DNA of 64,000 nucleotides from the NCBI RefSeq assembly GCF_052425735.1, contig NC_135762.1, positions 7,192,001 through 7,256,000 of the forward strand, written 5' to 3'. Source of the DNA: Oculina patagonica. Lineage: Eukaryota. The stretch's first letter is position 1; each line of letters opens with the position of its first letter. The notes beneath the pieces were generated by a model. The model did not search any database. It saw only the letters and a program-made list of their open reading frames with translations, and was not told the origin of the DNA. This document shows, in pieces, positions 5,871 to 45,704 of the stretch. The position numbers and the translations under genes are program-made.

Positions 5871-8800
5871 TCATGGAGATTTTGGTTTGAGTTTCATCTC
5901 ACTTCCCTTGAGAAACCAGTTCCACTGATAATAACTGTTGTCATAGTTACCATTAAGAAGAGAATCGCCACAGGAGTTATACCACCAAGCTCCTCTGTTA
6001 TTTATAGCACAGTTGCTACTGGTCTTGTCGTTATCCCGATCCTTGGTAGAGAAAGACATGCCGTTATAATACTTTAGCTTATCCGTTGCTGAGCCAGAAT
6101 AGAAACCAACAAACAGCGTGTAGTTAGATGCCTCGTTAGTGACCGTAAAATTACTGTATTTAGCGTATTTATTTCCACTGGATGTTGTGTTGATTTCCAC
6201 TCGCAGCTGACTCGGAATCTCAGTCAGTTGATGAATCTTTTCATTTCCAAGCCAAAATTCTCCTCTGAGGTCACCGAACCCGTTCTTGTACTCGTCCCAA
6301 CCCCTGAAGAATCCAACGAACCCACTGAAGCGTTTGTGAAAGACAGTCCATCCACCACCATCCGTCTTCATGTCACAGTAGACTTCAAAACTGGTTTTGT
6401 TTGTTGGGTTCACTGTGTACACTCCACTCTTCTTGAAACCAGCAGAAAACAGCTCGGCGCAATCTCGGCCTGAGGAAATAAATTGCTTTAATTAATGATA
6501 GAAGTGAATCTTTTATCTTTTTTGCCTTGCCCAACTCAGTTGCGAATAAATATTTAGAACCTGCATTACGAGAAATGTATAGCTGCAATAAGTTCACGAG
6601 CTCTATGACAACCTACAAACGCTAGGTACCCCTTTTCTCATAGCCGCAAAAGACTAGTAACTTTAATAACAAAGAAAGAAGCAAAGATAAAGGGTTGAAA
6701 GAAAGATATCAAGAAAGAGAGAGAGAAAGACTCACTGTACAGAGGCAGAAAGACAGAGATAGAATAAAACCTGTCAAACCTGAACAAACAAGATGAAAAT
6801 GACATTATTATAATTAAATGTTTTAAATCAGTTTCGAGTTTGATAATAATATCATACTTAGCAACCAATTCTTCGTTAGGAGACACACATGCATAAAAAA
6901 ATAAGTAATCAACCTCGCTTACCAGTTTTTACAATCAGTTGCACCTCAGTCTCCACTTGAACAAACTCGCTCCGTGCAGAGCAGATATACGTTCCACTGT
7001 CTTTAGCCGTCAAACTGTTTATCTTCAGTTGTCCACCTTCCACTTGCGAGCGTTCCTCTGGTATGTTTCCTTTGCATCGTGTCCACGTGATGCTGGGTAC
7101 TGGGTGTCCGTCTGCGGAACAGTTCAGTGTGACTGTCTGTCCATGATAAAGTTCTATCTTGTCTGGCGGCTTGACTGTAAACTGAGGCACCACGTTGACT
7201 ATCAGAGCTGTCATGGCGTGCGATGTACCCATGACGTTGGTAGCAGTACAGATGTATGTTCCTGCGTCTTTCTTGTCTGTCTTTGTTATGGTCAAGGTCT
7301 GACCTTGGACAGTCGCTCTTCCACTGGGAAGTTGATCAAAGAGTTTGGTCCAAGATACCACCGGAGGGGGATATCCGATGACCTGGCACTTAGGGAGCTT
7401 GACATCTTTCCCGCTCTCGGCGTATATCGGTCCAGCGGGAAGAGATATCAGAGGGCGTGCTGGCAAGAGAAAGTTATTATTTTAATTAATCGGGCGTGGC
7501 CGATTTATAGTTTACCCTTTGGTCGTCCTAGACGATAGTCTCCTGTCGGGTAAAAATGACGGGGATAGCCTGGGCCAATCGGTTTCATTTCAGTTTTGAC
7601 AGTAAATCGTTGTAGGAACACTGGGTCGACTTTTGGGCTAATCTGCAATCTGGTTCTCTTCTTTGCTTCGGCGGGAGGACAGAGAAAAAAGCTTAAGGGG
7701 TAAAGTACTAATAATCACCATTGTGAAACTGTAGTTGCTTTGACAAGTTGAAGCTATTTTTGTAAATAAAAGGGGTAACGTCATTCATGTCACGCAATGT
7801 TTTTGTGGGAAACTTTGAAACTAGACGCTTTGCTGGTTTCTACAAATAGCAGTGTGATCTGGCGGTACATTTTTTTGAGGCGGACTCCACTTTAAAACTA
7901 TTTTTTATATATTTAGCAAGAAGTATGTCGATTTTCATTTCCGCACAGTTGGGCGTCAAAGTCGCCTGTCACAAAGAGTAGAATGTTTGCAGAACATGGT
8001 TTGGATATATTTTAGATTTGACTAGTGACGTTAGTAAGACACTTCTCAAGACGTCAGCAAAACATTGGTAATGTACAGTATTGGTGTGAACTTGAATGGA
8101 ATTTTTTACGAGATCAGTAAAGCTATCGAATGAAAAGATGACTTGAAAATGAAAACTTCGAATAATTATAATTAAATACCAATTGAATTTTAGATGAGAA
8201 ATTCCGGAAGTGACATCTGTGTTCAAAATAGGAATTTTTGTACAACTTAAAGTTCCGAAATAAAAGACCACATGTTTTGTAAAAATCACAGACAAACATG
8301 ATCAGGAAAACAAAACAGGCCAATGGGTTTTATTCACGAAAATACAACTTTCTTAAGAAAGAGTTTGTAAACAAGACAATGGAATCGAATTACATTTCAC
8401 ACGCAATTTGCATACATTTGAACTTGCAAAAAAGAAGTATCTCTGCCGAGACATAATAGCGAGACCTTACATTAATAATTATTGTATTCTGATCTGATTG
8501 TTATTTTTTATGCATTAACTATTTGAAAGTGGTTCTCATCGATGAAAACAAAACGGTTTTTCATTCACTGCTTGAAGTATTTATAGACGTGAAAACATTC
8601 GCTTAATCGAATTACATTCTGCACGAAATATTTTGTATCCATTTGTCCCGAAACTTTGAGGAAATTGAAATCTTTGTGGACAGTACTGCATAAAAGCAGT
8701 TCATAGAATTGAATAAAAAGATAAGAACCATATTGACAAAGGAAATTTTAAAACTTTATTTTGGCTCATTTTGACGAAATTCAGGATTTTCAAAGACTGC

Positions 8801-11800
8801 CAGTAAACGGCTGTATCTTGTCTGTCTCTAACGATTTTGCTACGGTTTCGAACGAGCTAATTTTTCAACATGATATCATGGTAGCGGGCAGAAGTCGGTT
8901 CGTTCTGAATTTTTCAATACGGTATACAAGTTACAGGTCAATATACAGACCTCTGTACAGTAAAAAACGTTTTGGGAACAAACCATTGTGAACTTATTTT
9001 CTATGTTGATCAGTAAAAATCCTTAGTACGACATGGGGTTTGTTATCAAGTTCGTTAGTACGTTAATACTGCAAGGTGTATAACCTCAGAGAATTATTAT
9101 CAAGTGTGTTTTGTTTTATTAGCGGTTTATACTCTAAGGTCTTGGTATGGGAGATCAAAATTAAGGCAAATTTCTGTTATTATCTGATTGCTTGGCACAG
9201 ATTAGTACGATACTGAATTGGTTAGGAAATGTAAACAAACATTAAATTGAATGAGAGTAGAAAGGGAGGGACAGGTGGGGGTGAAAGGAGATGGAAAGGG
9301 AGGGAGAATTAAAATCCATGCTTGGTTATATCACGGCAACCTTTGACTTCTGTTGTTTTCTCACAAGAACAAAACTTAAGGTGGGGTTCTACCTGAATTT
9401 GAATAGAACATTAAGAGATTTAAAGAAGGGATTGAAGAAAAGAATGGAAACACCTCCAAACAGTTGACCCCCTCGCAAGAGCACTCCGGGTTGTCAGGAG
9501 ACTGTTTGGTGTCCGTCCACCAATTTTTAACTTCAAATTCAAATTTTAAAATCACATTAAATCTCCAATATTTCTTATTTGTCTAAATTTTACTAATCCT
9601 TTGAGAAAAACTATCGCCTCCCAGACATCCCACAAAATCGTCCAAAAATTAACAAAATACTGCAAAACAAATATATATGGGATAAGTAAAGTTTTTTTGG
9701 ATTCCTTGAAACGCGGCTGAAATGGTTTTCAGTGTTTTCCAGCCCTTATACTTTGGGTCAGTACTACTATTCTTCACCAGTTGCTATTACAGTAATGGTA
9801 TGAAACAAATACCTAATCATTGGTCAATAAGTTGTGATCATTTTCTTGACAATAGTAGTTACCTGATTAGGAGTTGTTAGACTTGCCACAAGTCGCTCGT
9901 TTTTTCTTTGCATCTATAGTTACATAAATAAAATCGCTTTGAAATCAAGCACGAAAGACCACTTGAATAAAATCGCCTTTGTAATCGCGCGGGATTCATT
10001 TCTGTGAACGCGCACGCGAAGGAAAACAAATGACACTTGCCGAGGAATGGCTCGAAACGAGCGACTTGTGTCACTTGCAGGAAATCGATTCTAGCTGACG
10101 TTTTTTGCCGCGAAAATATTGCATCATTTCGTGTGCATTGAGTTGGTTTCTTTTATCGTGTTGACGTCAGTTTCGTGCGCCGTGTGCAGCTGACGTACGC
10201 TGTGGCGTGTGTTAAAATTGCGATTATGATTTTCTTCCCTTTTTGTGGAAAATCGTACTCAAGTCATTTGATGGCTCTCTCATTTCTGTAAGATTTAAAA
10301 GGGGCAGGCACAAAAGAAGAGTCTGTTCAAGAGGTAAAAAGTTAAACGCAAGCTTGTTTCACGAGCAGCGCGCGCTAAGTTGGCAAGCAGAGCGCGCTCA
10401 GTAAGGTCGCGCGCAATAATATGATTGACATAATCGCGATGGCGTCACCGGTAGAAAAATCCACCGGTGACGCCACATTTCAGAATTGGCGCGCTGCAGG
10501 TGAGACAAATCGCTCGTTCTGCCACGATCCTCCGCCATTTTGTTTCTCATATCTGCGCGCGCCCTCCCTTTCCGTATCCAGCGGTCTCCTGCGAATCTAA
10601 CGAGCGACTTGGAGCAAGTCTAAGGAGTTGTATACTGTTCCATTAAAGTGTAAGGGCTGCAAAATACTGAAATGCGTCAGCCACCTAAAGTGTTGAAAAA
10701 AGTGGTCTTCAGGTAAAAACCCCGCCTTTATTAAGTATTGCGAAAAGGCTGCACTTTGCTAAGTGTTACAAATTTATATTTTCTAGACGTCTAGTTCAAT
10801 CGTTTATTTGTATTGTGCGAAATATATTTTTATAAATTGCGACCATTATGTCATTAAGTAATAATGCAACCTTGAAAACATTCCAGATTTTCATTATTAA
10901 ATAAAAACACGAAAAATTCAAATTTGGGAAAACAAGCCTGTCAAAATGACGTTGCATGGTGATTTCAAGTTACTGGCACAATAACTAATCCTACCAAATT
11001 ATTGCGAGATAAATTTTAGATAAACGCGCAAACTTTGGCAGCGTTTGGTTGAATCTTGAAAAAGTTATAAGCGTCCAAAGTCAGCGCGGGCCTCAAAAGC
11101 CCCCACCCCCCCCCCCCCAGGCCTGAATAGGTTTAAGTGACTGTTTTTCCAGTGATTTTTACTGTACTGTACCCTGCCTTTCAAGTCAAAACAGATAGCT
11201 AATTATTAAGCGCCCGATTTTAAGCTTCTCAAGCTTCTCAAGCTTCTTGTTTTTTGTATAAAACAATATATAGTATAGCAGATAATGTTCATAATTACAT
11301 TGTTATACTTAAATAAAATGCAAGAAAATTTTTAACATTTTTTATGTGCAATTATTTCCAAATTAAGGTCATTGCTCAGAATTGCATTGCCCATCCTTTT
11401 TGCGGAAGATTTTTTTACCTAATCGTACCTTTTTGGTACGCTTCGGCGGCATATCAGGCGAGTTTGGTCGAGCCATGGTTCGTATTTTGGCGAGACGCAG
11501 TCGAGCCAAAATACCCATGGCGAGACCAAACTCGCCTGATATGCCGCCGAAGCGTACCAAAAAGGTACGATTAGGTATTTACCGTACCCAAATACAGCCA
11601 AAAATCCGGTTATATTTTTTGTTTTGTTTAAGGCATGCTTGCCATGTGCGTAATACAAATTGTGTTGACCTGCTTGTATTGATACTGTTTTGGTCTTCGA
11701 CACTGTTAACAAGTTCCTCTTCTGCCTTTTTTTCTGCTCGTTTGTTTGGCGTTTCATTCTCTAAATTTTTGTAATCCAAACTTAGCGAAAAATGTGGAAA

Positions 11801-14800
11801 TTCTAACTCCATTGTTTCAGTCTGAATGTCTCAGTACTCGTCGGCGAACATCGCGCAATTGGCGAGCGCGCTCAAGTTTAGTTTTGGCGGGAAAGTTTTT
11901 CTCCTTTTACGACCGCAAAACACCAGCTAAATTTAAATTACGAGGTTCTATTTCATTGGCAAAACGTCTTTTCAATTCATCGTACAGTAACACAACTTTA
12001 CTTCAAAGTGACCGTGATATGGTGGCATATCAGGTCAGTGACTTGATATCGTAGAATATCAGGACAGTAGATCGCGCTTCTGATTGGCTACTTGCGAATT
12101 TGGGTACGGTAATACGGGTAACAAGCGCGCGCACGTAAACAAAAGGCGGCTTTTCTCTATCCGGTTGAGCTCGCGAGAGAGATAAATCGTCGTTTTCTCG
12201 AAAATGACTGAGTACGGTGACCTATCAGTTTTTTCTCGTATTTTGAGTATAGTGATCAAATTCTTTCTATAAAATGAATACAGATCAATTTCTATGTTTG
12301 AAAAATAAATTATCACCGGAAACGTGTACTTTGCCAGTACTTGCAAAGGAATTATTAAGGAATTGTGCGGCATATACAAGGTTTTCCTGCTCCTAAACGA
12401 ATGGTGATCCACCTTTTTTATTTCAAAATTCAATTTCCCCTAAGGTAATCAACTAGTAGCTAGGCAAAGTTTGGCTGAAAATCTATGTTCAGTTCTGATT
12501 TCAGGGGTAATGACCTTAAAGAGTGCATAGTCCTAAACTATAAAATTGGAAACCGGCGTGATCACTCTCCAATAATAATAATAAAAATACTGAGGCGCGT
12601 GAAGAAACGAGAAATTTTTTCTTGACAATAGGGCCTGCTAATAAACAATCGGGTTTGAGATCCTTCATACTTGCGATTAAATTTGTTTCTATTTTTTCCG
12701 GCTGAGAAAGTTTATTTACCTTGGACGTTGAGTGTCACAGAAGCCTGAGCGGTCCCCTGGTCAGTACGAATTGTACACACGTACATTCCATTATCACCGA
12801 CTGTCGCATTTTTGATATGAAGTGTTCCTTTGATGATGGAATATCTTCCTGCTGGGAGGGAACCATCTTCTTTGGACCACGACACTGTCGCGTCAACATT
12901 TCGCTCCGGAGAACACTTGAACACGGCGGACTGATCCAGGGCAACGGTCCTAACTGCCGGCGTAACGATAATCCCAGGGGCAGAAATTACATCCCCCGCT
13001 TGCCCCCTGAATGGCTGCAGGGAAGTCGGAGTAGGCAAGGTGGGTTCTCCAGGTTCACCCTTTTGGCCTTTTATCCCTGGGGGTCCACGGAGACCCGGAT
13101 ATCCAGGGGACCCCTGTGGTCCTTGTGGTCCTATCTTTCCCGGTGGTCCCTGAACACAAATCTGACTTTGGCTAGTGCAGATCTTTTGCGTTGCAGTGTA
13201 GACGGATTTGGTGATTTGTTGTTGTATTTCAGGGGCCAAAACACCATTGTCTCCTTTAGGGGATTTGGAGGACTCAACATCTCGCCGGTCTCTTTTCTGA
13301 GCTGAAGAACTGTCTGACTCGTCTTTCGAGAAGCGAATTCCTATGATAAAGGAGTAAATGGTGTTACAATGCTACTTGGAGCATCATTGATGAGATAAAC
13401 AAGTGAAATACGTTTTCTTTCACTTTACGGTTTGCTGGGGTCAATTACAGCTCGTAGCCATAATTTCTTAACAGCATTGGATAAACGCATTTTTTCTGTA
13501 TTGTTATTTAACATACCAGTGAAAATCACTCAGAAAAGCACCATCGTAAGTATTAAGACGGAATCCACTAGGAAGTCGAGTAATATTTATTAAAGTTGGA
13601 CAAAAATCAAGTACCAGAATAATTTAAATCCTATTGCGTTATTTCCTACCCTTAATAAAAGGTAAAGATGTAAGTAATTATCCGTGATAACACCAACAAC
13701 AATTTCTTATCAGAGTCTGAGAAAATGAATTTCAAAGTTCACAAGGTATAGGCAAACTCTCACGTGTAGCCATTTTGGAAATTCGTCTTAAGCGATTCAG
13801 TGGAATTTAGCGGAACTTCGAAATTTGTTTTCGATGTTTGGTGTTGTTAGAAAAGATTTCTTTTGATAAGATATTTGAAGCAGTAACAAAAAAGTTTGCA
13901 ATAAGGTGGAAATAATTCTGGTACAACAATTTCTTATCAGAGTCTGAGAAAATGATATTCAAAGTTCACAAGCTATGGGCAAAAGCTCACATCTTTTAAG
14001 CGATTCATGGGAATTCAGTGGAACTTCGAAATTAGTTTTCGATGTTTGGTGTTGTTAGAAAAGATTTCTTTCGATAAGATATTTGAAGCAGTAACACAAA
14101 AGCTTGCAATCAGGTGTAAATAGTTTTGGTACATAATTTTGTCCAATAACTACTCGAAGTCCTGGCGGATTTCCTCTTAAAATACTTCTTTCTACAATTG
14201 TTACAACAACGCTCACCAAGTTGATATAACGTGACGGTTTACCTTCAGAAAGTCGATCGGGAGAAAACAAATGTTAATCTTATTATCAAATCACTTCTAA
14301 CTTCTAGGTCCCCACTCTTAACTTGAGCTAAAGATTGTCGAAGTGTCACAGATCGATAATGAGTCTGGGATTAGATCTCGCGCGGTATTAAATTGAAATA
14401 ATTCAATTGCTTTAGTGGAATTCAAAACACCGAGGTTACAGTTTTGCAGCTATTAATAACGACAAGGATTTCTAGAAAATTCTTAATAAGTAAGTAAATA
14501 TTCTAGAAATCTTTTGCGCTGATCCAACCGATAGATTATTTCCATTTCTGTCGCTTTCTAAAGACAACACGACCCGGCAAATATTTCATGCCAACGCCCC
14601 TTCCAGATAACATCGACTGTTGAAGAGAACAGAAAACACCGAGAAACCTTTTCGTTCAGGATATTTAATTGCAAAACATGCTACCATGATCCCACAGATT
14701 GTCTTTCTAGCAACCTGAGGCCACGAAGCAGCCGAAATCGAAACGAAAGAATCAAGCTTTTGGGAAGGGAGCGTTAAGTATACTGGTAATGTTTGCCTGC

Positions 14801-15813
14801 CGTGGTTGCTTTCTCAACTGAAATCACCCTGTAGTTGCATTAGCTAAACGATTAAACATAAAAAAATACTTTATACATTTTAGATATTCTTCCACTAATT
14901 TTGAAAGAGCTGCAGAATTGCTAGCCAGCTCTTGATTATTTTGGCGAAAATCGTTGAACACAAAAACGCCTTTGCCAAGAGGAAAACACCCTATAACTTA
15001 ACCTTTTCACGTTTTAAAATTATTGGTGAAAAGAAAATAAATAAACGTTCTTACTCAAATTTTTGGCCTGAGTTACATTTATAGGATGCTCTTACGGTAC
15101 TGTTTCACTTTTTTAAGTTTCAAAGATTCTTATTAGAGAAGATAGAAGAGAGTTCATTGATTCGAGTTGTAAACTAACGCTCAAGTTAAGTTTTCTAGGA
15201 ACGGTGACAGGAAGTCGTTAAACCCGAGTGACCAGAAGAGTTGTTCGGTATTGATACATCTGATGCATTTAATAGCAGTTCTTTCCAAAACACTCGTGGT
15301 GTATATTTTTCAAATTATGGGTTTTATAAATTAAATTATGTGTAAGAACTACGAAGCGAATATATTTTCGAGTACGTTTTAGTTGCAACTAAGACGTCGT
15401 CTCCATCTGTTCGAGGCTATCTAAGGGCATGTACTGGACTGAAAACCGAGCTCTTTTGGCATAAAATTATTGCAACAGGGCGAATTGAGCAAGCAAGAAA
15501 ACCAATCATTCTTAAGCCTTTTCCATCTAAACCTGAGAAACGCATGAAAAGAGCGCATCTACAGCGCGTCTACTCGGCAACGTACTGTACTGAATTCAAT
15601 AAAAATAAAAATAGACTCACCGTTTGTTGGAATGGGCGAAACGCGCGTCGTCGGTAACTGTTTTTCTCTTTGTTCGAGAGCCTCAAGTCTTTCCTTGTAA
15701 GATCGTAGCTCCAACTCAAGCCTCACATAACCAACACAGTACAAAAAAACGCTTGTAATCAAAACACAACAACAAACCATAAGAAGGCGGGAAGATCCAC
15801 CAGCGCTCATCAT
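5871..15813 (-). CDS. CniFL-like type II TM-collagen-3xIg-FReD protein, copy B (intact, ~649 aa)
   Basis: Exons 15813-15621 (193 nt, TM), 13340-12720 (621 nt; KRDRR, 12 Gly-X-Y triplets, Ig1), 7459-6923 (537 nt; Ig2+Ig3) and 6469-5871 (599 nt; FReD with [21 protein letters not shown]...EFWLG, FST.DRDND, GAWWY). Total 1950 nt, continuous frame, phase-1 GT-AG introns. Confidence 0.92.
9878..10622. mobile_element. Non-autonomous Academ(H)-like element, 745 bp
   Basis: 24-bp TIR TAGACTTGC(CA/TC)CAAGTCGCTCGTT and 9-bp TSD AGGAGTTGT (9869-9877 / 10623-10631). Interrupts a repeat whose uninterrupted relative lies at ~60170-60660. Confidence 0.8.
11416..11577. repeat. 162-bp near-perfect palindrome (hairpin element)
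   Basis: 54-bp perfect inverted arms (TACCTAATCGTACC...GGTC), CCATGG on both sides and an inner hairpin; absent from the paralogous copy D intron. Confidence 0.9.
11582..12109. mobile_element. TA-flanked MITE (Tc1/mariner/pogo-like)
   Basis: TA|CCGTACCCAAAT ... ATTTGGGTACGG|TA; absent in the copy D intron at ~40625. Confidence 0.7.
13697..14135. repeat. Tandem direct duplication, unit ~225 bp, in copy B intron 1
   Basis: ACAATTTCTTATCAGAGTCTGAGAAAATG...GATATTTGAAGCAGTAAC occurs at ~13697 and again at ~13925. Confidence 0.85.
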
Positions 15814-23400: not shown

Positions 23401-23713
23401 ATGCTTATTGCTTAAAACTAATTACACTACCATATAAGAGCTAAAGCCGCTTGATCAGAGTTCGACTGTTACAGAGCTACGAGTTCTAAAATCTATCAAT
23501 GAACCGGTTAATTAAAAGGCGATTTTTGCCTCGTCAGTTTTTTTTTCGTTTTTTTCCCTTGCCAGGTAGCCTGTGTACAGCCGCCCCCTCCCCTCAATAA
23601 AAATCGGGAAGGAGCGTCTGTGATTTACCGTTGATAATCGTGTTCCGGAATAATTTTGCATAAATTATGAAAAACGATTTACGCTGACCAAAATTTCCGT
23701 GGCGCACATTGTT

Positions 23714-25597: not shown

Positions 25598-27302
25598 TAT
25601 GTAATATATGTAAAGCTCCTGTTGAAACATTTGAGTTCCATGCTTCTGTTTTGTCAGAAAAAAATGTACGCTGAAGCTTCATTGATTTGTAAAATAATTT
25701 CATTTAGAGAGAGTTGTAAACAAAGGAAACAAAGAAAATTGTCAAGTAGTTGTTGATCGTTGGAGATGGTTCTCTGTTGCAAGTGTAATTCAAAGCATTG
25801 AATAAGGCAATTTTGGTGACATCAGTAAAACCCTCTGTTTTGCGTAATGGCATGTTGTCCTTATAGTTTGTAATCATGTAGTGCATGGAAAATTGTAAGG
25901 AGTGTTTGGAAAAATTAAGAAAATAGTTAACAGTATTTATTACATGTATTCACCAGTGGTGGAGGTGAACAGTGGTTGATATTTACCAAGCCACAAAGTG
26001 GCGAGGTAAATATCCACCACTTTCACCGAAACCGAGGTGAATAATATATAAACAATAGCCCCGATTTGGGGTGAAAATATGCAAGGATATTTGTTGCCGG
26101 ACATTATCTGTTCCAAGAAATGAACAGTTTTCCGAAAGCAAAGCTCAAGTAAAACTGTGAGCATTGAGGAAAGGATAATGTCCAAGGACAATATCCGTAC
26201 ATAATTTTGAAGCCAAATGGAGGCTATTGTGTTCATTATCCATCAAATATTTTTATGCAAGGCCGCATTGCTCAAAGCTTTGAAACATCAAAGTAATTCT
26301 GTCAGCATTCAAAATATTGTTAGTCTACTAAAAATGTTTAGTTCTATTAATTTTAACAATTTACTTGAAATCAAATCTTAACATTTGAACATAAATTGCA
26401 AAGTTCGTAAACTGGGGAATATCACTTGGGGAATATGATCTGATATTCCCCAATTTTGGCTGCATCATGTGACATGTTACAGTAAGCCTAATCGCAAGCG
26501 CAAAAAATATTTGATGGATTATAGAAAAGAACACAAGAAAGTGTTGGGGGAAGGAACATACAGCTCACAGCAAATCAAAAAATGGGTGATTGGCTTGAAA
26601 AATAATAGTGAAATATTGTTTAACTGAATTTATTAACAGCTTATATTACAGTGTGAATATTCCCATTTTTCTCATTTGAAATTTGCATGTAATTCCACAT
26701 TTTTCCTCCCTTCTAAGTTATTGTAACATATTTCCCACCCGAAACTAAAAATTGACAGGTGTCTTGCTAAGTTGTACTGATTCTACAGATCACCATGTGA
26801 CAACCTATTGTTTGTTTCAATGTTCAGTCTTTGCAAAACACAATATTGCCTTGAGGTGTGCAAAATTGAAAACCTTGAAAATTTCTCTAACTTGGCCAGA
26901 CTGTAGGTTACTGGAACTAATTGCAATTCAATGTCAATGGCTTAAGTTAACTTTTCTTTTATGTGAACAGGAACAAAAATGGTTTGCCAGCTACCACAAT
27001 GGGTGCATACAAGGCATGACTTCAAAATAAACCACAAATGAAACAAAATAAAAATCTGATTGAAAATGAATTAATTCGAAAAAAAATTCAGAATATCAAC
27101 TTTCTGGCCAAGTTTTCCATGGCATCACAGATTACTTAATATACATGTACATTTGAATGAAGGGGTTCATTGAATAAGGCCCTAAAGTGACTCCTGATCT
27201 TATATGAAATTCTCCCTTTGATTTACAAACATTACATAGGGCGGATAGGAAGGATCATAAGTCACCTGGAGGTCCATTCCAGGCATCCCTCATTATTGTA
27301 TT

Positions 27303-30300: not shown

Positions 30301-31965
30301 ATGATCTTTTCCAAATTCGTCCAGCTTTTTGTAGTAGTAGGAATGGCCTGTAGTGACTCTGAGGGAACCCAGTCGACAAAGAGAGCCCTGTAATAAATAA
30401 AGCCTGTGTTGATGCATGCTAAAGTCAAAGGCTACATTGTTTTGACCAATGCACCATTAATTTGCAATACCAGATCATTCAGCCAGTACTACACTGTAGC
30501 TACAATTTTTTTTATTAACACCATAGTCTGCATAGAAAAATTTAAATTAGGTTAAAATTTATCATTTTGGTAACTAATGCTCTGAAAGGAAAATGGCATT
30601 TCTTATAAATTAAGCTGTAAAAAGTATGTGTTGTGGTTCAAATCTGTCTTTGGTTTAAAATGCTTCTAACCAGTTTTATTTTTATTTACCCTTGTTTTGG
30701 ATTACGATAATAAATTCAATTTTAGCTGGTTTAAAAAATTTTAAACCAAAGATTAATAATTTTCAAACCACATATATCATACCTATGACAATGCCTTGAG
30801 GTGGGATGCAATGTATTCAGATGCAAGAAAGCAACAACTACTGTATAGTGACATGCCAAATTATTCACTTAGCAAATAAAATTTAATATGGTCCTCAGTG
30901 CTTTACGTGTGGACTAATGGAGTACGTAAAAACATTTGATAAAAATTGTTAAATACTCACAATTATCCCTGAATGATACAAAGTGATAGTGTTGATCAGC
31001 TGCATTGCATTCATACATGGGGACCTGTTCTTCAGCAAGACTGCCGCGGACATGCACACTGATGGCTGCCAGAATCGATCATCTCTTTTGCTTTTTCTGA
31101 CGCTGGCCGTCCATAGCACGGCACTGAACAAGGGAGCTTTCGATTCAAGTTCGGTGTTGAACTTCTTGAGTGAGAAGGACTGAAGATCTTTTTTGCTTGG
31201 TGATCGTAGGCAACTAGGATTTTTTAACGAGCACATAGCAGTACACTCACGATCAACTTCCTCCAAATACAACTGTTGCACATGTTTTCTCAGAATGGGA
31301 TTTTTCCACACTGCCCTTGCGATTTGCTTGTACGTACCGCGGCAAAGCATCTTGCCGAGCGACTCCAAACCTTCGTGTAAGTTGTTGACTTTCGCATTTG
31401 GTCGGCTTGGCCACTTGATTGAGACTTGAACGACTGTCTTCTTTTCCTCGACGTCGACTTCGCGGGCAGGAATCGGCGAAACAGGTCCAGCGAAAGCAGC
31501 AATGTCAACAGGACGACTTTTCTCCTTACAAGGTGTCGAGGTAAGTATACTTGACAACTGATCCGCCGATGTTTTACTTGTGAATGCGCTGCTATCGTCT
31601 AATGTCACAGATGCGCTCGAATCCTCCAACGCAACACGCTTTGCAGCTTGTTCTTGGAAAGAGCTTGACTGGTTAGAGGACTGCGATGTGATAACATTGA
31701 CTGGTACTGGATTAACAGAAGACTTCTTTGCGAGGAAGATTTTTTGAATAGTGTTATTTACCTCTCGAAGGTTCGTCGAGAGCGCCCTTCGTTTCTTCAA
31801 CACCGACAGACAATTTCTACAAATGTACGGCGAATTAATTTCCACTTTATACTCTAACGATAGCAATTCCTCTCGCACGTTAAAAGGATTGCCCCTTCGT
31901 CCATCAACAAGATTTTTATCCGTATTTTTCACGATACCTAAACCACAAAGCACACACGAACTCAT
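27303..31965 (-). CDS. Academ-type transposase, 4 exons, ~1023 aa
   Basis: Exons 31965-30961 (1005 nt), 30387-29806 (582), 29604-29341 (264) and 28523-27303 (1221); all phase-0 GT-AG joins, no stops. N-terminal CxxC...CxxC; candidate catalytic motifs LVFDNFDF, VADQLS, EIADWH, NIPLDLLLEFFN; C2H2 finger CFFPGC...HESTH. Confidence 0.85.
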
Positions 31966-32365
31966 GACAAATCTCACATTTTGGTTGTTGGTGTGAAAAA
32001 AAGTGATAGACTATACAGAGAAGGCCCATTATGTAAACCCCGCGAAAATTATAACCAATCGAAACGCGTTCTTTCGATGATGTAATGATCCACTGGTGAT
32101 AGCCAATCAGATCATTTTCCAAACATTCCAGAAAAAGTCACGTGGTCCGGAACACGATTATCAACGGTAAATCACAGACGCTCCTTCCCGATTTTTATTG
32201 AGGGGAGGGGGCGGCTGTACACAGGCTATTGCCAGGCAAAAAGTCACTTATCGCGCCCATTAAAAAGATCTGCGATTTTTAAGTCTACAAACCACTAACA
32301 GTCAATTTAATCCTAGTTCTTAATTTCAAAGTCCTTGTTTGGAGCGGGGCTACCAAATGAAAGCA

Positions 32366-35300
32366 TCACGGAGATTTTGGTTTGAGTTTCATCTCACTTC
32401 CCTTGAGACCCCAGTACCAGTAATAATAAGAACTGTCTCCATAGTTACCATTCAGATGAGAACCAGAGGTACAGCTGTTAAACCACCAAGCTCCTCGGTT
32501 ACTTACAGCACAGTTGCCACCGTTCTTGTCACTATCTCTATTCTTGGTAGAGAAAGGCATGGTGTTATAATAGTAAAGTCGATCCTTTGCTGAGCCAGAA
32601 TAGAAATAAAACAAACAGCGTGTAGTTAGTTGCCTCGTTAGTAATCGTAAAATTACTGTATTTAGCGTATTTATTTCCATTGGTTGTTGTGTTGATTTCC
32701 ACTCGCAGCTGACTCGGAATCTCAGTCAGTTGATGAATCTTTTCGTTTCCAAGCCAAAACTCTCCTCTGACGTCACCAAACCCGTTCTTATACTCGTCCC
32801 AGTCCCTGTAGAATCCAACAAATCCATTGAAGCGTTTGTGAAAGACAGTCCATCCACCACCATCCGTCTTCATGTCACAGTACACTTCAAAACTGGTTTT
32901 GATTGTTGGGTTCACTGTGTTCACCTTCGCGTTTTGGCTCGACAAATAAATTTTCCGTAGAAGAGATGTATGATGTCTTGCCGAAGTTCCCCAAGCGAAT
33001 CGCGAATGAGCACCCGCATATTCTGCAAAAATTGGACGGACCGCTTGATTTCGTCTTTCTGCCTCTTTTTGCAGGTTTTTTGGGGGTTGAAGAAGTCGTC
33101 TCAGACGCAAACTCAACATCGAAATAAAAACTCACGAGTTGTTTTGTAAACTGACACTTGAACAAGCACTTAACCGCTCAAATTTTATTGGTCCGATTTA
33201 ATTGAAAGGTCAAGAGGCGGAGTTGTAAATTACAAGGCGATGACAAGGGGAGGAGTCTAATACTTCCACTTTTATTCAAAGATGTCTACAGCCTCTCTAT
33301 TTTTCCTTCGCTCGCTCCCCCCCCCCCTCCCCCCGCGCGCTCGCGCTTCGCGCTCGCTTCGTTTGCTTTTTTCCGTTGAAAACTCGAGAGGCTGTGGACA
33401 GTCTAAAAGATATCAAGAAATGGAGAGAAAGACTCCATATTTCCTTGTTAGCACTAGTAAAATTACTAATTTTAAAAACACGAAACAACTTTTTAAGAAA
33501 GACTTTTTAGCAGAGAAAGACTCGCTGTACAGAGGCAGAAAGACAGAGATAGAATAAAACCTGAACGAACAAGATGAAAATGACACAAATTAAATGTCAA
33601 TCAGTTTGAAGTTTGATAATTATATCATACTTAGCAACCAATTCTTCGTTAGGAGACACACATGCGTGAGTGATCAGCATTGCTTACCAGTTTTTACAAT
33701 AAGCTGCACCTCAGTCTCCACATGAACGAACTCGCTCCGTGCAGAGCAGATATAGGTTCCACTGTCTTTAGCCGTCAAACTGTTAATCTTCAGTTGTCCG
33801 CCTTTCACTTGAGAGCGTTTCTCTGGTATGTTTCCTTTACATCGTGCCCACGTGATGCTGGGTACTGGGTGTCCGTCTGCGGAACAGTTCAGTGTGACTG
33901 ACTGTCCGTGATAAAGTTCTATCTTGTCTGGCGGCTTGACTGTAAACTGAGGCACCACGTTGACTATCAGAGCTGTCATAGCGTGCGATGTACCCATGGC
34001 GTTCGTTGCAGTACAGATGTATGTTCCAGCGTCTTTCTTGTCCGTCTTTGTTATGGTCAGGGTCTGACCTTGGACGGAGGCTCTGCTACCGGGGAGCTGA
34101 TCAAAGAGTTTGGTCCAAGATACCACCGGAGGGGGATACCCGATGACCCGGCACTTAGGGAGCTTGACATCTTTTCCGCTCTCGGCGTATATCGGTCCAG
34201 CGGGAAGGAAGATCAGAGGACGAGCTGGGCACGAGAAAGATTCGATTTCAATTTGTGTATAAAACAATATATAGAAGCAGATAATACTCATAATATTCAA
34301 GTAAATATCCAGTAATTTTTCCATATTGGACAGTACGTGGATAAGTGCCCAATATGATTGACGGTTGATAGAACTACTGTCCAATTCAGAAGACCAGAGT
34401 TCAAAACATGCCTTCAACATTTGGCCAAGCCTAACTTGCTGCAGTTTTCTTGTGTAATTATTTCAAATTTAATAGTTAATATACCTATGCTCAATTTGAA
34501 GCCCACGTGATCATTTTCCAATTATTTAAATTTGTTATTGACAGTAAGCTACAATAAGACCTGCTGCTGAACGATCGGGTTCGAGGTCTTGTATCCTTGC
34601 AATTATTTCGTTTTTTACTTTTTTCTACTGAGATATTGAAACCTCAGTTTATTTACCTTGGACGTTGAGCGTCACAGAAGCCTGAGCGGTCTCCTTGTCA
34701 GAACAAACTGTACACACGTACATTCCCTTATCACCGACTGTCACATTCTTGATACGAAGTGTTCCATTGATGATGGAATATCTTCCGGCGGGGAGGGAAC
34801 CATCTTCTTTGGACCACAAAACTGTCGCGTCAACATTTCGCTCCGGAGAACACTTAAATACGGCGGACTGATCCAGGGCAACGGTCCTAACTGCCGGCGT
34901 CACCACAATCTCAGGGGCGGAAATAACATCCCCCGCCTGCCCCTGAATGGCTGCAAGGAAGTCGGAGTCAGTGAGGTGGGATCTCTAGGATCATCTTTTT
35001 GGCCCTTTATCCCGGGGGGTCCGAGAGGGCCCCGTGGTCCTCGTGGTCCAATCTTTCCCGGTGGCCCCTGTGGTCCTTGTGGTCCCGGAGGTCCCTGCAT
35101 ACAAATCTGACTTTTGCTAGTGCAGATCTTTTGCGTTGCTGCGTGGACGGATTTTGTGATTTGTTCTTGTATTTCTGGAGCTAAAACGCCATTGTCTCCT
35201 TTGGACGATTCAGCATCTCGCGAGTTCCGTTTTTGAGCTGAAGAACTGGTTATGTTAACATAAGCAACGGGAATGTCTAAAAAAAAAGGAGTAAATACTG

Positions 35301-36743
35301 TTATGCTATCTCGATCGTCGATTTAAAATTTGTGAAATACAAGAATGTTTGTTCTTGTTGGGGATAAATGACGCCTTTCAACTTCTTTTGTATTATAAGA
35401 AGATAACAACATAAAAATCGAGATGGCCTAAGTTTTTTATTTTTATATTTCATACTTATGGAGGGTAGGCCTGCGCTCAGAAAGACAGAACCATAAAACA
35501 CTTTACTCAAAATAATGAAAGGCCTCGGGCGGAAATTGCCTTTTGCTCGGACACCCTAAGTGAGACCAAAAAATCCGCCCTAAGTGAGACGACTAGCATA
35601 TCCACCTCTTGCATATTGGAGCCATTCACCGGAAATTTTTGATGCCCACTTATCGCGAGGTTTTCCATCTTTGCTTGTTTACACGAAAATTCCAATGGAA
35701 CAAGGTTGAAGTGTTTTTTTGAGTCTCGACCGAAAAATCAAATAGACAAAAAGCCGATCGTCTAAACCATTATTTAAGATCCTCCATCCACGATCCTAAC
35801 TGCTTCAAAGCAAACAGAGTCTAGAATCCAGCCTCGCCAAAATTATCAATCGATAAGCAATCCACTGTATTTTCAACATCTGCATATCTGATTATCGTAG
35901 AATTCCGCAATCCGTGATCATTTTAAGGTGAAATTCGTTAATCCGCGAGCCTACTCACCCCCTCCCCCCCCCCCCCCCCCTGCTCTCAATAATGTTTAAA
36001 TTCTTTATGGCTACTTTTGAGGCTTAGTTTTCGCAACGTATTTTCCCTAAATCGTGCATTTAGTAACCAAGATTGTCACTATTATATTATGTAAGGTAAG
36101 GACATCGACCGCGAGCTGCAGATAAATGTACGTGTCAGCACAGGCAGACCACACTATGTGTTCGTGGTTAATAATCGTTCACATACGATTAACAAAAGAA
36201 ATATGTTGAAATCTATGAGTGTTATGAATAAAGCCCTGAAAATTACATTTCTTAATGAATCTCGTTCTATATATTTCAATAAAGGTGAATTAATGTTAAT
36301 TGACTCGCGTGTGGTGTTTTTTCGCGTTCCTGGGCCGTATTAAGCGTTTTTGTTTTATGTTACGTTCGGCCAAAGGCCGGTAAGAGGAGAAAAGGAGATG
36401 CACTCGACTAGATTAATTCCTGGTTGTCTTTTTTAGCCGACTGAATATCTCGTTTATGTTTAAAAGGCGAATCAAAAAAGTCGTTAATAATGCGGAACAA
36501 GCCATCCAACTTACCTTCATTCAAGGATTTGAAAACTGGAACTGTTGTTGTCTTTTGCTGGTTTTCTTCCAGAGCCAGAATTCTCTCATTGAGAGCTTTT
36601 AACTCATATGCTAGTCTCATAAAACCAACGCTGTAGAAAACCACGCTGATTAAAGTCAAAAAACAACAAAAAGCCACGAGAAGGCGAGAAGATCCGCTAC
36701 TGCCAGCACTCGTCATTGTGTATGGTACAGTAGTGTCTAACAT
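32366..36743 (-). pseudogene. CniFL-like copy C, pseudogene
   Basis: Exons 36743-36515, 35276-34657 (620 nt; 1-nt deletion in a C-run at ~34940), 34224-33688 (intact Ig2+Ig3) and FReD remnant 32920-32366. The FReD acceptor and first codons are replaced by a TE fragment, and there is a +1 frameshift at ~32605-32612. Confidence 0.88.
32921..33405 (-). mobile_element. One-ended Academ-like fragment replacing the 5' end of the copy C FReD exon
   Basis: Ends in GAGAGGCTGTGGACAGTCTA (TAG terminus on the minus strand), with an internal inverted partial copy at 33284-33297. Carries a coding remnant (TPKKPAKRGRK...FCRICGCSF...STENLF) fused directly to FReD sequence at 32920. Confidence 0.6.
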
Positions 36744-38818
36744 CTGAGGAAATCTTTGCCCAGCTTTAGCAATTTATGAAGCCAAAAAGGAAAGTAGCAT
36801 ATGTTGGCTTTTTGTCAAAACAAATTAAAAGATTGCCTTCGTTTTTCAGAGGTATTTCAGAGGTGTTTTAGAGGTGTTTCGGAGGCGTTTTAGCGGGAAA
36901 AAATGTTGCTTGCCGTAACCTGCTGCTCTCACTGCCAAAAAAATAAATACTGAGGTTAATTAGTTTACACATATATCAGGTTATACGGGAGCTGTAAATG
37001 ATTGATATGCTGTTTTGAACTGGCCAATCTTGGCCTTTTTTAGACGGAAGAAGTCTGTCGCTCACAATCAAAAATTCAGTGTTATCTCATTTATCCTTTA
37101 GACATTAAGGGCCATGAAGGAGTCAGTTTCTTAATCGTTGAAATGGTTTTACCTACTTGAGCCTGTACACTGCACTGAGTTTTCGTCAACGCACCCGTGC
37201 TAGAATTTGGGACGATTCCTCAACCGTTTATTGCCAATAGAATACAAGTACATTCAAATGAAAAAAATGATACCACTGTTGTAAAGCACCTAAAAAACTA
37301 ACTTAAATTTTAAGCCCAGAAAAAAAAACATTCGAGGCATGTTTGCTTTTTCTGCCCCTCAAATACATATCTTTTCTTAAATGTTCCGAAATATCGGTAA
37401 ATTTATAATAAAATCAAACAGGCATATGACGCGAATAAAGAAAATCATTGTCAACTCGGGATCTTGTTACAAAACACTCCGGATTCAACGAGTTGGCATG
37501 AGAAAAAGCGTGGCGCCGGAGATTGATTAGCAAGAAGCTGATCATATTTCGTGCTACAGGAACATGAGGGTTAGCGCTACATCCGCTTCATTCGTTTAAG
37601 ATTCGTTCAGTAAGACTTCTTTCTGTTACAGAAGTCTTCAGCAAATCGATAATAAATAGTTCACAGTAAATGAAACACTTTTTGTCGTATATTGTTGTTG
37701 CGAGCTTAACTTTTTTTGTTCTCAGTCTTAGTTGCTGAAAGCGCAAAGTAGCAATGTTAAAGAATCAGTTCCCGTTATTACATGTTATACATTAAATGTC
37801 AGTTCAGAGGATTTGATGACACGGCATCTTTATTGGTAAAAACTAGTGGATATGAGGCCACTCCTGAGCAGTTTTAAAGCTTTTCAAGACATAATGTATC
37901 TTAACATACTAATCAATATTCAGTGATAAAAAAATATAAACATAGAAGTCACCCGAGCTCTTTTATGAGTTATAAGCACTTCGAGCTGAAATTATAGGCG
38001 TTTTGACACGATAAAAGATGACCATAACTTGTTTGCCAATGGTTAGGCATTCGTTTGATGACATTATTTTAGCATCATCTGACATAGGGCGGATAATATC
38101 GATCCAACAAAGCACAACTGCTCTAAACCATTTCCACTTGTGCCTTCCAAACCACTTACACTAAAAGGGCAATAGGTTACATTGCAAATCTTTTTATTAT
38201 ACCATTTTTATATCGTGCTTGACATCATTATAACATCTACCTGTAGATCTTCAATGTTGATGAGGGAAGTAGTCCCCAGCTGATATGCTCACATGTGAAA
38301 AAATTTTACACAGAAAAAAATGTTGTCCACGGCTCTAAAAGCTCTACGTGCGAAATATATTTATGAAACAAAACATCCCTTTTTTTAGTACGAACTGCTT
38401 AGACTGCCGTATTCGAATTGTAAAACAGGTCCATTGAACAGTCGAGAAAGATGTATTAGTTTTTGGCGAGGAAACGCAAAATAAAGACCTGTATTAAAGA
38501 ATGTATTTTGACATTCCTTGACATTAAACCATTAATACTATTATTAATAAAGCAGTAAATTAACCAATCCTGACTCATCCTCTGAGTTCTTTTAATTTAA
38601 TTTCTCTGCAAACTGGTAAATGACGGAATCCCAGGGATGAGTTTGCTTGCCGCTTAATGATCGAAGACTTTCATTCAAACGAACACTTATAAAACAAAAT
38701 ATTTAAATTACAACGATAAAACTATTTATTGAACAGTAATTTTTGTAATTTTTTTTCATTGTCTTTTTTATCCTTTTGATATGTCCTTCCAGTTTTTCGT
38801 TTTTTTAATAGGCCTTGA

Positions 38819-41800
38819 TCAGGGAGATTTTGGTTTCAGTTTCATCTCACTTTCCTTGAGGTCCCAGTTCCACCGATAATAACTTCCTGCATATTGAGCG
38901 TTCAGAATATGACTGGTGCCACAGCTGCTATACCACCAAGCTCCGTAGGCTTTAGCACAGTCACTGCCGGTCGACTTGTCATTATCCCGATCCTTGGTAG
39001 AGAAAGGCATGCCGTTTACATACTGCTTAAGATAATCCGGTGCTGAGCCAGAATAGAAACCAACAAACAGCGTGTAGTTAGATGCCTCGTTAGTAACTGT
39101 GAAGTTGCCATATTTTGCATACCTTTGGAGACCTGATGTTGTGTTGATTTCCACTCGCAGCTGGCTCGGAATCTCAGTCAGTTGATGAATCTTTTCGTTT
39201 CCAAGCCAATACTCTCCTCTGACGTCACCAAACCCGTTTTTATACTCGTCCCAGCCCCTGTAGAATCCAACGAACCCATTGAAGCGTTTGTGAAAGACAG
39301 TCCATCCACCACCGTCCGTCTTCATGTCACAGTACACTTCAAAACTGGTTTTGTTTGTTGGGTTGACTGTGTACACTCCACTTTCCTTGAAGCCAGCAGA
39401 AAACAGCTCGGCGCAGTCTCGGGCTAAAAAAATAGAATGAATAAATGAATGACTGAAATGCAGAATTTTTGGCTAATACTCCAGCTGTCTTGTCCAATAA
39501 CTATAAGTACTGGCAACAAAGTTATCAAAATGTAGAAGTGGCTAACATAAATATAGAGTACAGGCGATCTAGTCAACCTATGTCTTAGTAACTTGAAAAA
39601 AATGCACAAAAATATTGAACAAACTGGACTATTCACAGCCCTCGAGCTCCATTTTTTTGTTCTGCATTTTTCTTCGACCGTTGAACGCAGGAAAAAAAAT
39701 ACGAGAGAACAGGACGCAAGGGAACAGTTTACTAGAAACTGACAGAAATAAAAGAGTTTTAATCTAAGGGATCGAGGAGAACGAGGTAATTTCAACATTT
39801 AAAGAATAAAAGAACGCATATATACTTATGATTTGCATATAGGAGATAACGCATGTGTACAGTGCTTACCAGTTTTAACAATCAGTTGCACCTCAGTCTC
39901 CACATGAACGAACTCGCTCCGTGCAGAGCAAATATAGGTTCCACTGTCTTTAGCCGTCAAACTGTTTATCTTCAGTTGTCCGCCTTCCACTTGAGAGCGT
40001 TCCTCTGGTATGTTTCCTTTGCATCGTGTCCACGTGATGCTGGGTAATGGGTGTCCGTCTGCGGAACAGTTCAATGTGACTGTCTGTCCATGGTAAAGTT
40101 CTATCTTGTCTGGCGGCTTGACTGTAAACTGAGGCACCACGTTGACTATCAGAGCTGTCATGGCGTGTGATGTACCCATGGCGTTGGTAGCAGTGCAGAT
40201 GTACGTTCCTGCGTCTTTCTTGTCTGTCTTTGTTATAGTCAAGGTCTGACCTTGAACGGTGGCTCTTCCACTAGGAAGTTGATCGAAGAGTTTGGTCCAA
40301 GATACCACCGGAGGGGGATATCCGATGACCCGGCACTTAGGGAGCTTGACATCTTTCCCGCTCTCGGCGTATATCGGTCCGTTAGGAAGGGAGATCAGAG
40401 GGCGAGCTGACACGAGAAAGTTATTATTTTAATTTTGTGTATAAAACCAGAAGCATATATATATGCTTCTGATAAAACAATATGAAGTATAGCAGATAAT
40501 GATCATAATTACATTGCTATACTTAAATAAAATGCAAGGAAATTTTTAAATTTTTTTATGTGCAATTATTTCCAAATTAAGGTCATTGCTTAGAATTGCA
40601 TTGCGCATCCTTTTTGCGCAGGATTTTACGGGTAACAAGCGCGCGCACGTAAACAAAATGGCGGCTTTTCTCTATCCGGTTGAGCTCGCGAGAGAGATAA
40701 ATCGTTGTTTTCTCGAAAATGACTGAGTACGGTGACCTATCAGTTTTTTCTCGTATTTTGAGTATAGTGATCTATAAAATGAATACAGATCAATTTTTAT
40801 GATTGAAAAATAAATTATTACCGGAAACGTGTACTTTGCCAGTCCTCGCAAGACTCTCGCAAGGGAATTATTAAGGAATTGTGCGGCATATACAAGGTCT
40901 TCCTGCTCCTAAACGAATGGCGATCCACCTTTTTTATTTCAAAATTCAATTTCCCTTAAGGTAATCAACTAGTATGCAAAGTTTGGCTGAAAATCTATGT
41001 TCAGTTCTATTTCGGGGGAATGACCTTAAAGAGTACATAGTCCTATACTAAATTGTAAGCCCGCGTGATCACTCTTCAATAATAAAAAAGAAAAAAAAAT
41101 GAGACGCGTGGAGACACGAGAAATTTGTTCTTGACAATAGGGCCTGCTGATAAACGCCAGATCGGGCTTGAGATCTTTCATACTTGCGATTAAATTTGTT
41201 TCTACTTTTTTCCGGCTGAGAAAGTTGAAACTTAAGTTTATACCTTGGACGTTGAGCGTCACAGAAGCCTGAGCTGTCCCCTGGTCAGTACGAATTGTAC
41301 ACACGTACATTCCATTATCACCGACTGTCGCATTCTTGACATGAAGCGTTCCTTTGATGATGGAATATCTTCCGGCGGGGAGGGAACCATCTTCTTTGGA
41401 CCACGTTACTGTCGCGTCAACATTTTTCTCTGGCGAACACTTGAACACTGCGGACTGATCCAGGGCAACGGTCCGAACTGCCGGCGTAACTTTAATCCCA
41501 GGGGCAGAGATAACATCCCCCGCCTGCCCCCTGAATGGCTGCAGGGACGTAGGAGTCGGTAAGGTGGGTTCTCCAGGTTCACCCTTTTGGCCTTTTATCC
41601 CTGGGGGTCCACGGAGACCCGGATATCCAGGGGATCCCTGTGGTCCTTGTGGTCCTATCTTTCCCGGAGGTCCCTGCACGCAAATCTGACTTTGGCTAGT
41701 GCAGATCTTTTGCGTTGCAGTGTAGACGGATTTGGTGATTTGTTGTTGAATCTCAGGAGCCAGAACGCCATTGTCTCCTTTGGGGGACTTGGAGGACTCA

Positions 41801-45564: not shown

Positions 45565-45704
45565 GTTTTTTTATGTTTTATTTTTTTATTCTTTTTTTTT
45601 TGATTAATGCTTACAACAATGCTTACAACAATACAATACACACAAGGAAGGAAAAAATTACAAGGTAAAATAAATGAAACAAAAAGAAACGATGTATTAC
45701 AAAT
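45565..45704 (-). mobile_element. 5'-truncated non-LTR retroposon 3' tail
   Basis: 12-bp TSD AGGCGCTTACCG (45553-45564 / 45705-45716); T-rich tract at the left end; empty site at ~16995. Confidence 0.75.

Follow-up and report, generated by a model that had tools for sequence, protein, structure and literature searches.

Loop-restricted diversity, paralog exchange, and probable positive selection in a tandem array of CniFL lectin genes from the coral Oculina patagonica

How corals tell symbionts, pathogens, and neighbors apart is an open question, and the CniFL lectins have been named as candidates for this task from their domain content alone. A 64,000-nucleotide window of the Oculina patagonica genome (NC_135762.1, positions 7,192,001 to 7,256,000; the whole stretch analyzed here) carries four tandem CniFL genes, A to D, all on the minus strand and all built on one common exon plan, as read from stop-free segments, motif positions, and splice sites. 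By definition, members of this family combine collagen, Ig, and fibrinogen-related (FReD) domains, mostly together with a transmembrane domain, and they are proposed lectin-pathway receptors (PMC5094078). A first-pass annotation of the window, made from the letters alone, described copies B and D as nearly identical up to the motif FYSGSA within the FReD and strongly divergent beyond it, and proposed diversifying selection for recognition as the cause. Does the variable end of the FReD reflect selection on a ligand-binding surface, or is it the product of history, drift, or error? We put the probability at roughly 0.6 that the array encodes CniFL lectins with a conserved scaffold, on which the loops at the rim of the binding pocket have been diversified by exchange between paralogs together with positive selection.

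Differences between the two intact copies

The spliced models of B and D are uninterrupted open reading frames (ORFs). In a cysteine-anchored family alignment, from which all B-D counts are taken, the exon encoding Ig2 and Ig3 differs at 5 of 181 residues, the first 80 residues of the FReD at 5, and the FReD up to FYSGSA (hereafter the N half) at 10 of 127. Past FYSGSA (the C half), 20 of 70 aligned residues differ and four indel columns preserve the reading frame. The contrast between the FReD halves is not due to chance, because Fisher tests are significant for B-D differences in the C half versus the N half (p = 2.8e-4) and versus the Ig2-3 exon (p = 1.4e-8), as well as for the ratio of non-synonymous to synonymous changes (33:12 versus 12:24; p = 6e-4).

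These counts bear out the contrast drawn in the first-pass annotation, and it had also placed the three FReD exons correctly, all of them on the minus strand. The cysteines, GAWW, and SEMK, described there as fixed, are fixed in B, C, and D and nearly so in 33 family members; both Cys, G164, W167, and two Ca-binding Asp are each present in 33 of 33 exons. Two of its points need amending. The C-terminal half had been called hypervariable; there is variability past FYSGSA, but most of it falls within a handful of short loops (four or five) rather than over the whole half. The loop sequence of C had been listed beside those of B and D; B and D are intact, but C is a pseudogene with replaced codons and two frameshifts.

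The same pattern could in principle arise from history rather than selection, if the 5' part of the genes were repeatedly homogenized and the 3' end kept an older divergence. The 5' regions of B and D, introns included, are 90 to 96% identical (Kimura two-parameter [K2P] distance, 0.04 to 0.09), and intron 3 and the 3' flank defy alignment both in the B-D comparison and in that of D with its ortholog. Further, the synonymous tree length across the family is about 1.8 times larger in the C half, with a mean pairwise pS of 0.40 versus 0.27 in the N half. Between B and D themselves, however, dS is 0.37 in the N half and 0.41 in the C half, whereas dN rises 5.4-fold, from 0.041 to 0.220. Because dS is equal in both halves and dN is very different, the N half is kept similar by purifying selection and not by recent homogenization; its omega is 0.11 between B and D and reaches 0.18 across the family. 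The Ig2-3 exon likewise combines appreciable synonymous divergence (dS of 0.19 between B and D, with a range of 0.15 to 0.27) with low omega (0.08 between B and D, with a range of 0.08 to 0.24). An account based on concerted evolution only is thus very unlikely. As a candidate for the FReD exon, pure homogenization of the scaffold is largely refuted, dS being equal in both halves.

One outcome that the first-pass annotation named as refuting its reading was a dN/dS at or below 1 combined with equally raised synonymous divergence. Pairwise, region-wide dN/dS in the variable half is 0.53 to 0.98 among B, C, and D and never exceeds 1, but the two dS values given above are close to each other, so synonymous divergence is not raised along with dN and that outcome did not arise. 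Three sequences cannot settle the matter of selection, so family members were added.

Exchange and probable selection across the family

We assembled 33 distinct, uninterrupted, full-length FReD exons from the window, from a contig of an NCBI coral assembly that carries the D ortholog (L001), and from coral metagenome contigs. The N half (127 codons) and C half (69 codons) were fitted with GY+F3X4 codon models, with five beta categories in the site models, using our own codon-likelihood code, which matches the IQ-TREE likelihood exactly. M0 estimates omega at 0.18 for the N half, against 0.48 for the C half. For the C half, M2a (lnL = -2706.14) improves on M1a (lnL = -2748.36) with a 2dlnL of 84.4 and places 16% of codons in a class with an omega2 of 3.5. 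M8 (lnL = -2698.82) improves on M7 (lnL = -2737.02) with a 2dlnL of 76 and on M8a (lnL = -2731.42) with a 2dlnL of 65. No class with omega above 1 is found in the N half, where M2a collapses onto M1a across the 127 codons of the 33 exons. The selected columns, with posteriors above 0.95 or between 0.92 and 0.95, are 130, 132, 135, 160, 161, 162, 172, 174, 188, 192, and 193. A test in the manner of fixed-effects likelihood (FEL), with site-specific dS, gives beta > alpha at columns 135, 160, 172, and 192 (p < 0.05) and also at 161, 162, and 186 (p < 0.1). The site-model check suggested in the first-pass annotation therefore assigns some 11 C-half codons, and no N-half codons, to a class with omega near 3.5, and the signal lies well past a null inflated by recombination (see below).

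A non-synonymous excess can be faked by misalignment of loops near indels, by decaying or unexpressed copies, or by chimeric metagenome contigs. Selected columns 135, 174, and 193 do adjoin indel columns, and one MAFFT alignment shifted a cysteine of D by one codon, raising both dS and dN; at columns 160 to 162, 172 to 174, and 188 to 192, however, loop lengths are identical in most sequences and are anchored by the cysteines and GAWW. The family loci come without species assignment, but only uninterrupted full-length exons were admitted, and the same positions vary in more than 110 independent protein clusters. We consider an artifact of this kind very improbable.

The two halves of the FReD have discordant genealogies. 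Each half rejects the tree of the other, with a dlnL of 123 for the N-half data on the C-half tree (approximately unbiased [AU] test, 7e-5) and of 165 for the reverse (AU, 1e-6). This discordance persists on third codon positions alone and after removal of the selected codons (dlnL = 50 to 81), indicating that it is genealogical and not merely the result of convergent amino acid change. Synonymous divergence is also a mosaic; at codons 95 to 127, dS is 0.05 between B and C and 0.79 between B and D. Even D and its own ortholog, whose flanks are 94 to 96% identical (K2P, 0.038), differ in the P subdomain at 15 of 72 residues and at 2 indel columns. These differences fall in clustered patches, one of them B-like, and dS in the patches is 0.21 versus a flanking non-coding divergence of 0.038. 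Because the halves have different genealogies, even at third codon positions, exchange between paralogs is demonstrably at work and shuffles the loops as well.

Judging from the alignments, one lineage has had the DNA next to its FReD exon replaced. Intron 3 of the D ortholog (L001:3192-3455) partly matches that of B (6922-6470), with 92% identity over 50 bp and weaker stretches, and shows no match to that of D (39869-39424). Within the N half, the loop at FReD codons 95 to 103 reads SSGNKYAKY in B (6185-6159) and SGLQRYAKY in both D (39139-39113) and its ortholog, with many synonymous changes alongside; this loop looks like an old conversion-tract boundary and not a product of selection.

Recombination on this scale can mislead tests that assume a single tree. 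Null data were simulated under M1a with the fitted parameters, with three or six blocks placed on unrelated trees, and each of 47 replicates was analyzed on a single inferred tree. About 40% of the replicates passed the nominal chi-square threshold, and the maximum likelihood-ratio test (LRT) statistic was 32.2; the same pipeline gives 98.1 for the real data. Among the null replicates, omega2 peaked at 2.55 and its class never took in more than 8% of sites, versus 3.5 at 16% in the real data. Since the observed LRT lies far beyond the null maximum, recombination alone, as modeled, does not explain the selection signal.

The variable loops and the putative ligand pocket

The variable segment had been assigned to the P subdomain, and this assignment agrees with our alignment, in which it spans approximately residues 376 to 450 of FIBCD1, a region that contains the Ca site, the Cys401-Cys414 disulfide, and the S1 pocket (PMC3908420). 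Sites were mapped through a HMMER alignment to FIBCD1 and the papers describing its structure (PMC3908420, PMC10825690). Columns 162 and 172 correspond to FIBCD1 Tyr405 and His415, which form the walls of acetyl pocket S1 (PMC3908420, PMC10825690). Column 188 adjoins the invariant Trp aligned to Trp443, and columns 130, 132, and 135 lie ahead of the position of Lys381, a residue of the adjacent pocket S1(2). The length-variable loop ahead of the first P-domain Cys corresponds to FIBCD1 residues 396 to 399, which supply Ca ligands and contact extended glycans (PMC3908420, PMC10825690). Around these positions, the two Ca-binding Asp, both Cys, GAWW, and LN.NY are invariant. Clustering of the selected residues around the pocket in three dimensions is what this mapping would predict.

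Among the residues that make up the conserved S1 pocket (Tyr405, His415, Tyr431, Ala432, and Trp/Tyr443), the Trp443 equivalent alone is invariant. Position 405 is Asn in B and Tyr in D, and position 415 is Gly in both; each takes 11 residue types in the family. The S1 pocket appears to be remodeled, because the Tyr431-Ala432 segment is about 13 residues shorter than in FIBCD1 and is deleted in the HMMER alignment.

Taken together, these data suggest the following scheme. Strong purifying selection holds the stalk and Ig domains in place, together with FReD residues 1 to 127, and four or five short loops of the P subdomain are hypervariable among paralogs and even between orthologs. By homology with FIBCD1, ficolins, and tachylectin 5A (TL5A), these loops would ring the S1 acetyl/glycan pocket and the S1(2) extension of it. 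One source of the variability is repeated exchange of sequence between paralogs, by gene conversion or recombination within and around the FReD exon; a second would be diversifying (positive) selection acting on about 11 codons of the pocket rim. The outcome would be a germline-encoded set of trimeric lectins that share an effector scaffold and may differ in ligand specificity.

Several considerations weigh against this scheme. The evidence on these genes is at the level of sequence, and one of the three FReD copies (C) is dead. Recombination inflates the nominal test, so the LRT p-value cannot be taken at face value and only the margin over the null counts. Branch lengths in the codon-model code were fixed up to one scale factor, per-site FEL support is modest, and omega averaged over the P subdomain stays under 1. 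The exon set comes from coral samples of unassigned species and may mix alleles, paralogs, and unexpressed copies. A tree-free measure, mean pairwise pN/pS, reaches only 1.17 at the 11 codons, which were picked post hoc and are near saturation, compared with 0.28 for the remaining C-half codons and 0.17 for the N half; the value at the 11 codons is compatible with diversifying selection but not strong on its own. Finally, the S1 pocket may be built differently from that of FIBCD1, and AlphaFold2 (AF2) gives a pLDDT of about 50 for the P loops (residues 141 to 180), so the pocket mapping rests on the sequence alignment to FIBCD1.

The same observations lend themselves to an account without positive selection, in which the acetyl pocket has been lost (its His415 and Tyr431 equivalents vary and the loop is shorter), the rim loops drift under relaxed constraint in a gene-conversion mosaic, and exchange among old lineages inflates the statistics. 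Region-mean omega values of 0.48 to 0.98, the pN/pS at the selected codons, the non-conserved S1 residues of B (Asn and Gly), and the frequent pseudogenes of the family (C, L035, and L036) all fit it. M2a does put 28% of C-half sites at an omega of 1, but it also puts 55% at 0.09, and the Ca ligands, both disulfides, GAWW, and LN.NY do not vary, indicating that the domain is maintained as a functional binding module. Likewise, recombination inflates the LRT in simulation, yet the LRT of 84 to 98 is three times the largest of the 47 recombination-null replicates, M8 is favored over M8a by 65 log-likelihood-ratio units, and the fitted omega2 class exceeds that of every null replicate. Relaxed constraint as the whole explanation is rather unlikely, and we favor exchange combined with positive selection.

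Architecture, gene layout, and relatives of the array

In the proteins encoded by B and D, a short cytoplasmic tail leads into a signal-anchor and then a coiled coil; a furin-like site and a collagen stalk of 12 triplets follow, then three I-set Ig domains and, at the C terminus, the ficolin-type FReD. Pfam searches of the exons identify Collagen, three Ig domains, and Fibrinogen_C (PF00147; E = 3.3e-59 for B, covering profile positions 3 to 196 of 221, and E = 2e-56 for D). By inspection of the translation, a 21-residue hydrophobic stretch directly after MMSAGGSSR is a predicted N-terminal transmembrane segment, and the products of B and D are both predicted to be type II membrane proteins. 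The closest solved structure by sequence is FIBCD1 (4m7f; E = 2e-53). An AF2 model of the FReD head (pTM = 0.83) has M-ficolin, FIBCD1, and L-ficolin as its best Foldseek matches (TM score, 0.87 to 0.89). Both FReD disulfides are present, as is the Ca site, a D-x-D pair of Asp with a loop that runs on to the first P-domain Cys; the Cys3/Cys31 and Cys401/Cys414 equivalents are invariant, and the Asp393/Asp395 equivalents occur in 33 of 33 exons.

This architecture agrees with the CniFL identity proposed in the first-pass annotation (Pfam; PMC5094078); collagen repeat, Ig, and FReD occur in one polypeptide, along with the predicted N-terminal transmembrane segment. Ficolins in the strict sense are secreted, with collagen followed directly by the FReD; here, three Ig domains intervene and the N terminus is a signal-anchor. 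Nor do the genes fit the description of molluscan FREPs, which are secreted and have diversified IgSF domains; the Ig exons here are near-invariant, and the proteins have both a collagen stalk and an anchor in the membrane.

Two motifs hint at function. PGKIGP occurs in all four collagen stalks (B, 13143-13126; D, 41667-41650; and exon 2 of A and C) and fits at the sequence level the MASP-binding motif of MBL and ficolins, Hyp-Gly-Lys-Xaa(aliphatic)-Gly-Pro (PMC2856262), which hints at a possible link from these CniFLs to the lectin-complement pathway. Past the anchor and coiled coil, and ahead of the collagen stalk, there is a basic site of the furin type (KRDRR in B, 13296-13282; KRSPR in D, 41820-41806). 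It could free the ectodomain, which might then be shed as a soluble lectin.

Feature coordinates are collected in Table 1. Every intron of all four genes is in phase 1, so any exon, including the FReD exon, can be exchanged between copies with the frame kept. The exon 3-exon 4 junction predicted here is the exact fusion point on a related coral contig (L083), so that contig represents a transcript spliced in part or else a relative that lacks the intron. The array arose by segmental duplication. The segment with A and B (1-22000) and the segment with C and D (33678-48900) are 87 to 94% identical, introns included, and the paralogous A and C are 92% identical, again with introns. Between B and C lies a large insertion (23567-32228) with minus-strand ORFs of 353, 231, and 406 amino acids, one of which contains a C2H2-like motif; on its right side, only some 140 bp separate it from the pseudogene C stop codon. 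Intron 2 is about 5.3 kb in B (7460-12719) and about 0.84 kb in D (40407-41243). Because the two have only short stretches in common (11258-11413 and from 12113 on), B intron 2 has gained inserted DNA, which is probably repeat-derived.

Table 1. Coordinates of the CniFL genes and their parts in the window
Feature	Position	Strand	Description and basis
Gene A	25..2909	-	CniFL that runs off the window; stop-free segments and splice sites; exons 1 (transmembrane) 2909-2708, 2 (collagen and Ig1) 1615-995, 3 (Ig2-3) 561-25; FReD exon past the left window end
Gene B	5871..15813	-	Intact CniFL, 649 aa; exons 15813-15621, 13340-12720, 7459-6923, 6469-5871; FReD-exon coding sequence 6467-5871
Gene C	32366..36716	-	CniFL pseudogene; exons 1 36716-36515, 2 35276-34657, 3 34224-33688, FReD remnant 32924-32366; frameshift near 34940 in collagen/Ig1 exon 2, +1 frameshift near 32618 in the FReD; unrelated sequence in place of the first 15 FReD codons
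Gene D	38819..43963	-	Intact CniFL, 652 aa; exons 43963-43768, 41864-41244, 40406-39870, 39423-38819; FReD-exon coding sequence 39421-38819
B exon 1	15621..15813	-	Short cytoplasmic tail, hydrophobic anchor 15789-15724, heptad-like coiled coil 15723-15661; read from translation
B exon 2	12720..13340	-	Furin-like site, 12 collagen G-X-Y triplets 13149-13042 with PGKIGP, Ig1
B Ig2-Ig3 exon	6923..7459	-	Part of the near-invariant scaffold
B FReD, conserved N-terminal part	6087..6467	-	A and B subdomains, to FYSGSA; no omega>1 class; AF2 pLDDT about 90
B FReD, P subdomain with hypervariable loops	5892..6086	-	M2a/M8 posteriors, FEL, FIBCD1 alignment
B selected codons T579/K581/K583	6086-6072	-	
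B selected codons I606/N607/N608	6005-5997	-	
B selected codons G618/D619	5969-5964	-	
B selected codon Q632	5927-5925	-	
B selected codon F636	5915-5913	-	
B Ca motif DRDNDK	6041-6024	-	Invariant
D FReD, conserved N-terminal part	39041..39421	-	Comparison with B
D FReD, P subdomain with hypervariable loops	38840..39040	-	Comparison with B and with the D ortholog

The nearest public proteins are scleractinian and form more than 110 distinct clusters at 90% identity, 73 to 85% identical to B, with the same conserved frame and variable loops; the few named relatives come from Montipora foliosa and Orbicella faveolata. These homolog sets consist of FReD-exon-sized products and genomic loci, a length filter having left out full-length CniFLs, and a search of representative proteins returned mainly multi-FReD proteins and no protein of the window. 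Tandem arrays are not peculiar to this genome, since other coral assemblies carry several distinct FReD-exon proteins on single long contigs (five on L002, of 305,946 bp, and three each on contigs of 945,286 bp and 240,442 bp). Two related FReD exons on coral metagenome contigs contain premature stops (L035:1103-1684 and L036:1-537); as with gene C, dead copies seem common in the family.

Both the CniFL family and the diversification of FReDs by gene conversion and positive selection, in molluscs and insects, are already known. Large lineage-specific FReD families of invertebrates, among them Biomphalaria FREPs, mosquito FBNs, and oyster and mussel FREPs, are viewed as diversified immune lectins; gene conversion and positive selection have shaped these expansions, and in Biomphalaria the FREPs join Ig domains with an FReD. 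In snail FREPs, diversity resides mainly in the N-terminal IgSF domain, and somatic diversification has been claimed. Here, by contrast, the Ig domains are near-invariant, the rim of the FReD pocket is variable, and the protein also carries a membrane anchor and a stalk of collagen. The oyster expansion has been described separately (PMC4346834).

CniFLs were first reported with the Aiptasia genome and then surveyed in actiniarians, where their copy number is multiple and variable and the adaptive value of this variation "remains unexplored" (PMC5094078). The window genes show no architectural difference from the CniFLs of that survey and are members of the family; added here are a scleractinian tandem array, hypervariability restricted to P-subdomain loops, an omega>1 class, and exchange between paralogs. 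The FReD fold of ficolins, FIBCD1, and TL5A is shared (TM score as above, 44 to 47% identity), as are the Ca site, both disulfides, and the Trp443 equivalent; with FIBCD1 the genes further share a type II anchor and coiled coil. Unlike those proteins, they place three Ig domains between stalk and head, they are most variable and positively selected at the Tyr405 and His415 positions, which are conserved there, and they form a large tandem family rather than one to three genes. Coral tachylectin-2, a putative immune lectin with high amino acid diversity and positive selection (PMC2880987), is a precedent for both features at a coral lectin, although its fold is unrelated and its diversity is allelic, at a single locus with no tandem paralog array. 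In the literature searched, we found no report that CniFL or FReD genes of corals are hypervariable or under positive selection; such a report may still exist.

The pattern is that expected of an inherited repertoire of recognition receptors, and an immune or symbiotic role, through glycan binding by trimeric heads, would be in keeping with it. A bolder proposal likens the rim loops to complementarity-determining regions (CDRs) encoded in the germline. Short-patch exchange among neighboring FReD cassettes, aided by the phase-1 exon boundaries and with pseudogenes such as C as donors, would continually reassort the loops, and selection would keep their diversity. Each colony would then carry an individual lectin set that sorts Symbiodiniaceae, microbes, or conspecific tissue, and the invariant PGKIGP stalk would lead to the MASP/C3 pathway. 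We consider this proposal, taken as a whole, quite unlikely.

If diversification of the pocket rim is confirmed, about 11 residues would be singled out, and the heads of B and D, both intact and easy to express, would be at hand for binding tests with glycan arrays and with symbionts or bacteria. The array would also offer a natural system of scaffold and variable loops with which to relate receptor repertoire to symbiont type or disease resistance. Cnidaria would join the phyla that have diversified multigene repertoires of FReD lectins, which suggests that this innate mode of diversification is ancient or has arisen repeatedly.

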